Position numbers and translations under genes: made by a program
Shown here: positions 59,901-63,701 of the stretch, in pieces
How the letters are laid out: every line of letters starts with the position of its first letter
How positions within the stretch are numbered: position 1 is the stretch's first letter
Notes under the pieces: generated by a model
The model's input: only the letters and a program-made list of their open reading frames with translations
The model's database searches: none
What the model was told of the DNA's origin: nothing
Assembly (NCBI RefSeq): GCF_001194135.2
Contig: NC_068998.1
Location: 15,817,040 to 15,881,039 of the forward strand
Reading direction: 5' to 3'
Length of the DNA stretch: 64,000 bases
Source of the DNA: Octopus bimaculoides
Lineage: Eukaryota

Positions 59901-62900
59901 TCGATTACATCGACCGCAGAGTTCAGCTAGTACTTATTTTACCGTCCTCGGTAGAATTTGAACTCAGAACGTACCTGCCACCAAGCAAGTATGTCATTCT
60001 CACCAACTCGTTACCTAAGAAGGACGAAATAATAATAATAATAATAATAATATATATATATATATATATATATATAGAATTAAAGTCGAAGTTCGGAATT
60101 TTATTAGTTCTAAATGAATGGCGTGCTGTAATTATCTTGCGCAGACGAACACTAGCCTTTGTGTGAGTGTGTGTGTATATATGTAGATCTATTCACACAC
60201 GTATTTGGTTTCATAAACACACGAGGCAGGCAGTAATATCGACTTATCACTAGATAAGTTTACTCACTTGAAGGGAGGAAAAAAGGCCCCGAACCATTAG
60301 CTATGTATAAGCATATCAGCGAATACGCGTAAATGTTTTGTGCAAATGACAATACACCCATTGAACACATGTAAGGCTGTGTGCGCTGCCATCTTTAAAT
60401 ACCCACAATGCATCACAATGACGGCCATCAAAAGTGAAGTACGAAATTATATTTTTATGTAGAGAATGTGAAGTGAGGCATTCATCCCTTTTCGCTTTAA
60501 TATTATTAAAGTACCGCGAAATAAAAACAAGGATATTGGACGTAATGAAAGAACACTAAATAAAGTTGTATCAGACGTTGGGCGTTGAATCTTTAGCCAC
60601 ACCACAATAGAAAATGTGTGTGTGTACATATGCATATAAAGAAAAACAAATGTTTGGGAAAGATCATGTTGTTTTGCTACCCCTTCACCCAGCCCCAAAC
60701 TGAACAGACTGATGATCAAAGACCTTGACAATCATGTCTTTCTCTTGGATATTACATATTTAGAACTACAATATCCAATGTGTTTATTCCCCAGTAGAAG
60801 TGCAATATTTGAGAGAGATCTAACAGCTATTTCTAGAAGGTCGAGAGGGAGAGAGAGAACGTAAAGGCTCTCCCGCGTTGACCTGTTTATATTTCGAGAA
60901 GTTAAAAAGAAAAAAGAAGCAAAATCATTTTTAGGCAAGTTTATCCATAGACACGCCAATAATTATATAAATATATGCTTTATAAGTGTATGTATATATC
61001 TATATAGTCATGACAAGAGACATATTCGAGGAAAGATAATATTCAAAAGTATTTTCTATGGAACATATAGAACACACATCTGCCAGATATACACACACTT
61101 GAAACATATGTGTGTGTATACACAGATATATAGTTACATGTATATGTATGTAACATACACGCAGATATATAGCTGCAAATATATGTACATATAATACGTA
61201 AAGAGTTGCATATATATATATATATGTATATAGAATACATACATATCTGAATATAATTATTAAAAAAAGGGAAGGGGTCGACAACTTCGTCTTTTCCTGT
61301 TTCCGGGATCGATTTAGTACAAGTGTACCAGTGATACATTCAGGTCGATGTAATCACCAATGCACTTGCCAATAAGTGTATAAAATATTATATAACAACC
61401 TTATTGATATTAGTTTGTTTTTGTCTTGTTTTTTTCCTTTGAATAGCAGTATTAGTAGAGCGTCGAACAAAATTAAAGATATCACTAGTTGTTTTTTTTA
61501 TACTGGGAGTTCAAATACTGCCTGAATCGACTTCGTAATTCATTCTTTACCAGACTCGATAAAACTGATGAGTACCAGTTAAATAATTGGGATCGATTTC
61601 ATCGAGTGCATTCTCCACCCTGGATTATATTAAATGCTCTCGAGTTTTTTGTTAAAAACCATTCTTATTATTAATAATAAATCTCTGAACTACATTCTTC
61701 TTATTATTTTGATTTCTCAGTCTAACAAAATAAAAAAAAAAGTATTCCTCTACTATGACTGGACTACCCGAAAACATGAGGGTGGGGGGTGGGGCAACAA
61801 CCAAACAGACAAACACACATACATACATACACACAGACGGACGGACAGACAAACAAACAAACAGAAGAGAAGAGATTGGTCCCTCACCTTTGAAATTTTT
61901 GATGACCAATTTTTTGGCGGCGGCGGGTCTGTTGGCGGCGTTGAGGGGTGAAGCATGGTGTCTGCTGATACCATTGCTGGAGTTGGTCAGAGCGGAGAAG
62001 TTAGGTCTCCTCTCAGACTCGGTCATTGTTCTCACTCCTCTATCACCTTTTTCTCTCTCTACCACTTCGTCTACAGCCGCCGCTGCTGCTGCTGCTACTG
62101 GTGTTGCTGTTGATGCTGCTGCGTCTACTCCTCCTCCTCCTCCTCCTCCCTCACCTCTGTCTCTTTCTCCTTCTTCTCTCCTCTCTCCTTTTCTCTTACT
62201 TTCTTCTTCTTTTTCTTCTTGTTTATGATGATTGTGGTTGCGGTCGTCGTCGTCTTCCTTCTCTTCCTTACGTCCACCACTACCACCTCTGCTGCTGCCA
62301 GCGCCGCCGCTGTCACCACCACCACCACCACTGCTGCAGCTAGGACCTTCTATGTTTTGCCCACTTTTGTCCCTCGATGTCGACGGAGCAGTGAAAGTCT
62401 TAGTGGTATAGTTACTAGTAGTTGTGGTTGTTGTACTGGTTGAGGTACCTGTACAACTGGCAGAAGTGGTGGTAGGAGTGAGGGTGGAAGTGGTAGTAGC
62501 AGTGGTTATGGTATTGGTGGCGGTGGTGAGGTTAAGTTCCTGGTCGTCGCTTGCTTTGTTTTTGAAGGTTTGCGAATTCACTTTGCTCGTCACAACAGTC
62601 GGTCGGATGCCGTTAGTACTGTTAGTGGTGGTGGTAGAAGTGGTGGCGGCGGCGGTGCTGCTGCTGGGGCCACTGACCTCTTTGCTTTTGGCTGCTGTTG
62701 TTGTTGTTGTTGTTGTTGTCGACGACGACGCCACTGCCGACACACTTTCAACTTTAGTTGTTGTTGCTGATGCTGTTGTTGTAGCAATGACAGTTGAGAT
62801 GGTGGTAGATGGTTCGACCGAGGAGCAAGAGCCGTCAGTCCCAGAGCTGGCACCTCCACCTTGACCACTTCCAGTATGTTCTGCTTCTTCACTTACTCCT

Positions 62901-63697: not shown

Positions 63698-63701
63698 GCA
63701 T
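63678..63701 (-). promoter_or_regulatory. Out-of-frame uORF (MHASLKR*) overlapping the first CUL4 ATG
   Basis: Sequence ggaATGcATGcct; ATG CAT GCC TCT CTC AAG CGT TAA. It matters only if the transcript starts upstream. Confidence 0.55.

Follow-up and report, generated by a model that had tools for sequence, protein, structure and literature searches.

An ATG-free coding spacer between two in-frame start codons of the octopus cullin-4 gene as a possible means of choosing between a long and a short protein

Why would a protein-coding stretch of about 1.67 kb, lying between two in-frame start codons, contain no ATG in any of its sense frames? This question is raised by the first coding exon of the gene located on the minus strand of the DNA analyzed here, a 64,000-nucleotide stretch of the Octopus bimaculoides genome (contig NC_068998.1, positions 15,817,040–15,881,039), referred to below as the window. 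Judging by its domains and closest relatives, this gene is cullin-4 (CUL4), the orthologue of CUL4A/CUL4B. Its first in-frame ATG (ATG1) opens a long CUL4 protein, and the following one (ATG2, the codon of Met558) is the proposed start of a short form. An earlier note on this DNA had suggested that the ATG-free stretch, together with an overlapping upstream open reading frame (uORF), may act as a leaky-scanning switch giving both forms from one mRNA. On balance, the sequence evidence allows us to assume that selection keeps the stretch free of AUG and that this desert gives ribosomes which scan or reinitiate on the long mRNA access to Met558, a reading that we hold to be somewhat more likely than not.

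Between positions 63953 and 61974, the only ATG triplets of the sense strand were found at 63953, 63701, 63697, 62026 and 61974. The absence of ATG from all sense frames between 63697 and 62026, which had been noticed by eye, was thus exact, and all 1668 nt were empty (Table 1). An out-of-frame ATG had been said to return about 55 nt after Met558; it was found at 61974, 52 nt downstream, and all five cephalopod sequences compared have an ATG at this +52 position. In the whole window, ATGs are on average 45 nt apart, and apart from the desert no ATG-free run on either strand exceeds 374 nt. It was also reproduced that all 10 Asn and Asp codons preceding a codon that starts with G are AAC or GAC; overall, AAT accounts for 18 of the 41 Asn codons and GAT for 5 of the 25 Asp codons. 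In addition, no codon ending in A stands before any of the five Cys/Trp codons.

The desert is robustly non-random. Of all 64 trinucleotides, ATG showed the strongest depletion (0 observed versus 16.2 expected under a first-order Markov model), and its reverse complement CAT was enriched (31 observed versus 22.9 expected under the same model); the depletion is therefore strand-specific. The codon-shuffle check proposed in the earlier note showed that zero ATG is rare under every null model, with probabilities from 0.032 down to at most 5e-5. None of 3000 dinucleotide-preserving shuffles (mean 16.3 ATG) was free of ATG. Shuffling of codon order gave a mean of 11.3 ATG when performed globally (P(zero) ≤ 5e-5; 0 of 20,000), 9.1 within 50-codon blocks (P = 5e-5) and 6.4 within 10-codon blocks (P = 1.5e-4). 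Shuffling of synonymous codons gave a mean of 3.9 ATG globally (P = 0.0056) and 2.7 within 100-codon blocks, which follow local usage (P = 0.032). These tests leave uncounted the absence of Met itself among the 556 residues, which has a probability of 4e-3 if 1% of residues are taken to be Met. When the same shuffles were applied as a control to the CUL4 core of five mollusc transcripts, no depletion was found and, if anything, there was a slight excess; the core of these mRNAs contains 12–16 out-of-frame ATG per kb and 3–4% Met. General codon-pair bias thus fails to account for the desert.

The corresponding interval between the two Mets was then compared among cephalopods. No ATG was found in O. 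vulgaris (1647 nt; 15.3 expected, first-order Markov) or in O. sinensis (1647 nt), and Argonauta hians contained one (1905 nt; 14.1 expected under the same model). A cuttlefish transcript, the protein of which is nearly identical to Acanthosepion pharaonis CUL4, contained none in 672 nt (5.9 expected), and a second decapodiform transcript contained three in 981 nt (11.4 expected). The orthologous exons are therefore without scattered ATGs, the counts being 0, 0, 0, 1 and 3 versus the 6–16 expected. The three Octopus species are 96.5% identical and were for this reason counted as one lineage; apart from a few islands, most of the octopus extension cannot be aligned with those of Argonauta and the decapodiforms. 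The depletion was significant in the cuttlefish by both shuffles (synonymous P = 0.005, codon order about 2e-4), and codon-order shuffles were significant for Argonauta and for the second decapodiform (about 1e-3 each). Fisher combination over the four cephalopod lineages gave P = 6e-4 for synonymous and about 1e-9 for codon-order shuffles. In all four exceptional ATGs, position −3 is a pyrimidine, and the reading frames that they open have 2, 11, 12 and 17 codons and stop over 300 nt short of the second Met; such ATGs could be tolerated if ribosomes scan or reinitiate. The divergence between O. bimaculoides and O. vulgaris offered too little power (57 substitutions, with 0 ATG-creating ones versus 2.7 expected, P~0.07).

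The surroundings of the two start codons agreed with the earlier description. ATG1 has a pyrimidine at −3 and is preceded, 4 nt upstream, by an out-of-frame ATG (uATG) with G at −3, which opens the uORF MHASLKR*; ATG 62026 has A at −3 (ACAATGA). The octopus uORF ends 20 nt beyond the A of ATG1. The ATGCATGC arrangement with a uORF of 7–8 codons was found in 6 of 6 cephalopods, as well as in the mollusc L011, the oyster-type L013 and Haliotis L017, with the uATG at −4 lying within the string ATG(C/A)ATGCC. Across these species, the uORF overlaps ATG1 and ends 20–23 nt after it, and the next AUG lies 650–1890 nt further on. Every mollusc examined, as well as the hemichordate Ptychodera, has T at −3 of ATG1, and position −4 begins an NUG triplet in all 11 species. 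Lingula was left out of this comparison because its locus does not have the first coding exon at its beginning.

The extension between ATG1 and Met558 is disordered, of low complexity and rich in Thr, Ser, Ala, Gly and Asn; its 557 residues include 111 Thr, 104 Ser and 41 Asn. No stop codon interrupts its reading frame over 557 codons, and the other two frames contain 24 and 54 stops. Three pairwise comparisons of Octopus species revealed 14, 14 and 8 indels, all of which are multiples of 3, and the reading frame is therefore under selection. The N-terminus MPLSS(V/N) is common to octopus, bivalves, a gastropod and a hemichordate. Two short basic islands were also found (Table 1). The second of them matches SPKRIKLS of the cuttlefish by eye, whereas MAFFT put the two in different columns; bivalve sequences and L011 have HKKSRE or NHKRAR near the equivalent position. 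In non-cephalopod molluscs, these two basic clusters lie ~10 residues apart within an extension of 46–49 residues. By likeness to the nuclear localization signal (NLS) of CUL4B (PMC11763709), we infer that the two islands form an NLS-like pair. The open frame, the in-frame indels and the conserved MPLSS and basic islands indicate that the extension is genuine coding sequence, and the compared sequences indicate that cephalopods inflated an ancestral spacer of ~140 nt to 0.7–1.9 kb by low-complexity insertions. A Pfam search of the extension returned no domains. A poly-Ser run at 63279..63253 was seen to consist of (TCA)9, so that its antisense strand reads (ATG)9 and its sense strand has no ATG, which illustrates the strand specificity.

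Table 1. Coordinates in the window of the features of the CUL4 locus discussed in the text.
Feature	Position	Strand	Details
Further upstream ATG	63953..63906	−	ACAAATGT; A at −3; would open a 15-codon uORF
34-nt A run	63825..63858	−	~130 nt upstream of ATG1; shorter in O. vulgaris
GGCC...GGCC inverted repeat	63714..63734	−	leader, 13–17 nt upstream of uATG; predicted small hairpin
Overlapping uORF	63678..63701	−	ATGCATGCCTCTCTCAAGCGTTAA = MHASLKR*; AUG 4 nt upstream of ATG1, G at −3
ATG1	63695..63697	−	start of long 1317-aa CUL4; TGCATGC, T at −3, C at +4
CUL4 coding exon 1	61888..63697	−	ATG1 to splice donor; 603 codons + 1 nt
AUG-free coding spacer	62027..63694	−	556 codons; 1668 nt, 0 ATG in three frames
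Basic island 1	63527..63550	−	NHRKRRLS; aligns with KKRKLS / KKRRLS of other molluscs
Basic island 2	63182..63205	−	NHKKIKVS
Purine-rich tract	62098..62297	−	75–86% A+G, 3–9% T; just upstream of Met558; Glu/Lys/Arg/Gly-rich segment
ATG2 = Met558	62024..62026	−	in frame; ACAATGA, A at −3; proposed start of 760-aa short CUL4
First ATG past Met558	61972..61974	−	out of frame; end of desert
Other CUL4 exons	11864..41627	−	cullin repeats, cullin homology domain, neddylation domain; stop codon ~11864 (tblastn, exon flanks)

How could this architecture give access to Met558? A 43S complex arriving from the cap would meet AUGCAUG, in which the uAUG has the better context and ATG1 a poor one (U at −3, C at +4). 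In leaky scanning, ATG1 would be passed because it is weak and only 4 nt from another AUG, and subunits that miss both would scan on. In reinitiation, ribosomes would initiate at the uAUG, read the seven codons of the uORF through ATG1, which is thereby bypassed, stop 20 nt on and resume scanning. The two routes would be mutually compatible, and for the subunits that bypass ATG1, the next AUG would be that of Met558 (A at −3), ~1.7 kb further on. A start at ATG1 would yield the 1317-aa form with its basic NLS-like islands, which would be CUL4B-like, and a start at Met558 would yield the 760-aa form without them, which would be CUL4A-like. We infer the use of both sites, their ratio and a difference in localization, the latter by analogy with CUL4B and CUL4A (PMC11763709). 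The limits of the desert coincide with ATG1 and Met558, ATGs return 52 nt later, and the cuttlefish leader is free of AUG apart from the uAUG, a pattern that fits access from the 5' end. The conservation of the weak ATG1, of the uATG and of Met558 adds to this support. Of the conditions that the earlier note had named as speaking against its switch, the three examined by computation (shuffles, orthologous exons and transcript starts) did not refute it. Selection against AUG and an architecture permitting a downstream start are supported, and the pair of long and short proteins is a prediction from the sequence.

Several points weigh against this interpretation. Two-site initiation is deduced here from nucleotide and protein sequences. 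To our knowledge, scanning through 1.7 kb of a translated open reading frame (ORF) would be near or beyond the longest documented cases. The window stops 303 nt upstream of ATG1, which is short of placing the octopus transcription start site (TSS), and the start contexts were scored by the general eukaryotic Kozak rule, from which the cephalopod consensus may differ. The uATG is absent in Mytilus, where GUG stands in its place, and in Ptychodera, where UUG does. The signal of the synonymous shuffles is modest in a single species (P = 0.006–0.03 in the window) and falls short of significance in Argonauta and in the second decapodiform; the depletion thus resides mostly in the choice and order of amino acids, where it could in principle stem from protein-level constraints. 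Finally, the short non-cephalopod spacers show a weak trend only (2 ATG versus 3.4–5.1 expected, P = 0.08–0.23).

The competing explanation that survives best, which we consider unlikely, is that an internal TSS or cryptic promoter lies in exon 1, in which case the stretch would be the 5' untranslated region (5'UTR) of shorter mRNAs and the two proteins would come from two mRNAs. The arguments for it are that 5'UTRs are generally under selection against AUG, that the 760-aa RefSeq models start at Met558 despite the intact upstream ORF, and that the M1/M87 forms of spastin were first attributed to leaky scanning and later to a cryptic exon 1 promoter (PMC2474578). However, the desert starts right at ATG1, whereas an internal TSS needs AUG-free sequence only downstream of itself, and the conserved weak ATG1 with its overlapping uAUG would be left without a role. 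The transcripts also bear on this point. Decapodiform contigs from eight sequencing runs (two species, Logan) carry the leader, ATG1, the whole extension and the core on one mRNA, and all of them reach upstream of ATG1, although assembly would mask shorter co-terminal transcripts. The earlier note had held that a TSS just upstream of 62026 would speak against the switch; in the two decapodiforms, the mRNAs begin 160–400 nt upstream of ATG1 and run unbroken through the extension into the core. The cuttlefish leaders measured 380–399 nt in four independent assemblies, and their sole AUG is the uAUG. A 999-aa Logan variant (P0247) with the start MTEHSG was set aside, as its first Met is probably a GUG taken for a start by a gene caller of the prokaryote type; other cuttlefish contigs have VTEHSG in frame.

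The annotation of CUL4 differs among octopuses. The protein has 1317 aa in the current RefSeq release of O. bimaculoides, 760 aa in the older release (XP_014772273.1) and in O. sinensis (XP_029645640.1), both of these models starting at Met558, and 1286 aa in O. vulgaris. The same intact ORF from MPLSS to Met558 was found in all these genomes, and the upstream ORF of O. sinensis is free of ATG. The present analysis accounts for the disagreement between 760 aa and 1317 aa in such closely related octopuses. In the O. vulgaris model, the start MSRSSEE... lies in a 3-nt ATG|GT exon located 1.6 kb upstream and spliced to CAG|AGC inside exon 1. This start is a probable model artefact, as the normal MPLSS ORF is intact there.

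It is improbable, in our view, that the desert only limits damage, that is, that ATG1 is leaky for another reason (e.g., regulation by the uORF), that junk AUGs are purged, and that the short CUL4 has no distinct function. Such an explanation shares the sequence evidence of the preferred model (weak ATG1, uATG and desert), and the short non-cephalopod spacers are indeed little depleted in out-of-frame ATG. The conservation of Met558 across Bilateria argues against it. Among the best 120 CUL4 matches, 54 contained a NFSAL-type motif and an N-terminal extension, two of these being spurious motif matches of vertebrate CUL4B. All 52 remaining extended invertebrate CUL4 proteins contain an invariant Met ~9 residues before the NFSAL motif, and the residues flanking it vary (MTES, MTDS, MADS, MGET, MNEP, MAEE). 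Between M1 and this Met, no further Met was found among 4805 spacer residues over the 52 proteins, which are phylogenetically non-independent. Proteins beginning at the equivalent of Met558 were found in Tubulanus, gar and mammals, the vertebrate CUL4A start being aligned with Met558. Moreover, a stronger ATG1 would be a far simpler remedy than the policing of 1.7 kb, yet the T at −3 is conserved.

A compositional or mutational by-product, by which triplet slippage of ATG-less units and the rarity of Met in disordered Ser/Thr/Asn-rich protein would produce the desert without selection on initiation, seems very improbable. The residue counts given above speak for such an origin, as do several period-3 tandem arrays found in the stretch with TRF, and the signal is partly at the amino-acid level. 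However, the arrays cover a minority of the 1.67 kb, and zero ATG remains rare when local order (mean of 6.4 ATG within 10-codon blocks, P = 1.5e-4) or the protein sequence (synonymous P = 0.006) is taken into account. The enrichment of CAT marks a strand-specific effect, the CUL4 core is undepleted, and the same depletion is found in the independent, unalignable expansions of decapodiforms and Argonauta.

The weakest alternative, which is hardly credible, is internal ribosome entry on the 200-nt tract preceding Met558 (75–86% purine, 3–9% U) without cap-dependent scanning, since the 1.4 kb upstream of the tract would then not have to be AUG-free, the Rfam scan gave no RNA family match, and the purine richness follows from the Glu, Lys, Arg and Gly codons of a conserved charged segment. 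A charged segment is present at the corresponding place in other cephalopods. The Rfam scan covered positions 61800..64000 and returned only a chance CrcZ match (E = 0.99). RNA folding showed that the extension is no less structured than the core (about −21 kcal/mol per 120 nt in each case), and its stability slightly exceeded that of shuffled sequence. The idea that the extension is unstructured for easy scanning is thus unsupported.

Access to Met558 by scanning or reinitiation has precedents, as it is already established for rice tungro bacilliform virus (RTBV), stoned, Snapin and green algae that a translated upstream ORF can be kept AUG-free for the sake of a downstream start. In the leaky scanning of RTBV ORFs I, II and III, ~895 nt are without AUG (Futterer et al. 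1996/1997, as summarized in PMC3542737). The likeness lies in a weak or non-AUG first start, a long translated AUG-free stretch and a downstream start in good context, and the difference lies in the viral pregenomic RNA, the three separate ORFs and the entry by ribosome shunting. In the octopus CUL4, by contrast, the mRNA is cellular, the in-frame start would give an N-terminally truncated proteoform, and the AUG-free interval is 1.65–1.9 kb long. The dicistronic mRNAs of the Drosophila genes stoned and Snapin (Wall, Phillips and Kelly 2005, as cited in PMC11892635), like green-algal bicistronic loci (PMC11892635), have AUG-deficient first cistrons with a first AUG in a non-consensus context. 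These are cellular mRNAs in which the dependence of the downstream start on the upstream AUG deficiency or context was shown by mutation; their two cistrons encode unrelated proteins, whereas both predicted CUL4 products share the core.

The tandem of uATG and ATG1 also has known counterparts. AUG pairs 4 nt apart share ribosomes and leak (PMC3542737). In the NB/NA segment 6 of influenza B virus and at the tymovirus starts, two AUGs are likewise 4 nt apart, in different frames and both leaky (PMC3542737). Both of those AUGs open long functional ORFs, whereas the octopus uAUG opens a uORF of seven codons, the role of which is likely to be the ferrying of ribosomes past ATG1. Spastin M1/M87 is similar in having two in-frame exon 1 starts, long and short isoforms and a weak first AUG. 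It differs in that a cryptic exon 1 promoter was shown to contribute, the spacing is 86 codons, and there is no kilobase-scale desert (PMC2474578).

Among vertebrates, CUL4B has an N-terminal extension with an NLS (PMC11763709). The predicted octopus pair mirrors the long NLS-bearing form and the short form that starts from a Met aligned with Met558; the difference is that the vertebrate forms are encoded by two genes. The earlier note had proposed alternative initiation "instead of gene duplication". This wording is too strong, as vertebrate CUL4B keeps the two-Met layout with a Met-free spacer, and duplication therefore did not simply replace it. In ~40 vertebrate CUL4B proteins, the Mets before the core are found at positions 1 and ~105 only (DVKMAEESSS), with a Met-free spacer between them; a few vertebrate CUL4B have one extra Met in the first 21 residues. 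Literature searches revealed no report of CUL4 alternative initiation or of such a desert in cephalopods. What is new here is the gene, the in-frame proteoform outcome, the length of 1.65–1.9 kb and a spacer that has grown more than tenfold while AUG-free.

The remainder of the locus, a complete cullin-4 gene, was characterized by a tblastn search with a CUL4A probe. It revealed ~20 exons on the minus strand from 62020 to 11864, with agreeing exon flanks, which together match probe residues 4–759. The match inside exon 1 spans 62020..61889, and intron 1 opens with GT at 61887–61886. The translation of exon 1 is identical to the first 603 residues of RefSeq XP_052830422.1 (O. bimaculoides cullin-4A, 1317 aa). 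Two assembly gaps (25222–25731 and 26161–26595) inside CUL4 conceal one or two exons, and six smaller N runs are present besides; these gaps account for the aberrant internal segments in the UniProt model A0A0L8HIV0. The matched database proteins carry PF00888, PF26557 and PF10557. Among the best 120 matches, nearly all of those with a descriptive name are cullin-4, CUL4A or CUL4B, and the names include no other cullin; a large number of Logan matches are nameless. Other molluscs were 72–79% identical in the protein search. The query used for finding cephalopod relatives was a protein of 848 aa. With the whole exon-1 product as a query, 8000 candidates were obtained and none was significant, as low-complexity words swamped the search, and a query of the 332-aa core returned only proteins of at most 579 aa, none of them from cephalopods. 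A microsatellite, (CAAACAGA)n / (ACAG)n, is located directly inside intron 1 (window 61802..61865), where sense-strand ATGs become dense again as a GTATGTATGTATG string.

Additional features were found in the leader. The repeat GGCC(A)-N5-9-(T)GGCC, a predicted small hairpin, is present in all mollusc leaders examined and is imperfect in Ptychodera. It could be an RNA hairpin that affects start choice or a palindromic DNA site; its stem bases are invariant, and therefore there is no covariation by which to choose between the two. The 34-nt A run is probably within the 5'UTR, because decapodiform transcript leaders are A-rich at the aligned position. The 22 nt around the ATG at 63953 are conserved in O. 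vulgaris and Argonauta, and the cuttlefish reads AAG there. The uAUG/AUG1 pair (window 63702..63695, minus strand) spells AAUGCAUG, which contains UGCAUG, a Rbfox-type motif. Ptychodera retains UUGCAUG without the uAUG, and the conserved unit may be either the uAUG or the hexamer.

As a broader proposal, about which we are more doubtful than convinced, bilaterian CUL4 mRNAs may contain an ancient dual-start module that sets the ratio of NLS-bearing to NLS-lacking CUL4 at translation. It would comprise an NUG or AUG triplet at −4, an AUG1 kept in a weak context, an NLS-encoding spacer that lacks Met and is poor in AUG, and an invariant in-frame Met. In coleoids, the spacer would have grown 5- to 14-fold (0.7–1.9 kb) and still be AUG-free. 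If this is true, no longer case of in-frame, scanning-dependent alternative initiation would be known from a cellular mRNA, and the gene would serve as a natural test of how far 40S subunits can scan in a translated ORF. The cephalopod CUL4 genes, with their conserved 1.65–1.9 kb, offer a test bed for the distance limits of scanning and reinitiation.

CUL4 ligases work on chromatin and in the cytoplasm, and in vertebrates this split is ascribed to two genes, with CUL4B, the product of which has the NLS-bearing extension, being nuclear and CUL4A mainly cytosolic. If invertebrate CUL4 mRNAs give both kinds of protein through the choice of start codon, the localization of a central E3 scaffold would be tunable through start-codon stringency (eukaryotic initiation factors eIF1 and eIF5, stress) with transcription unchanged. 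The start codon of CUL4A would then be explained as an ancestral internal start, and it would be worthwhile to look again for a short proteoform of CUL4B, the layout of which is the same.

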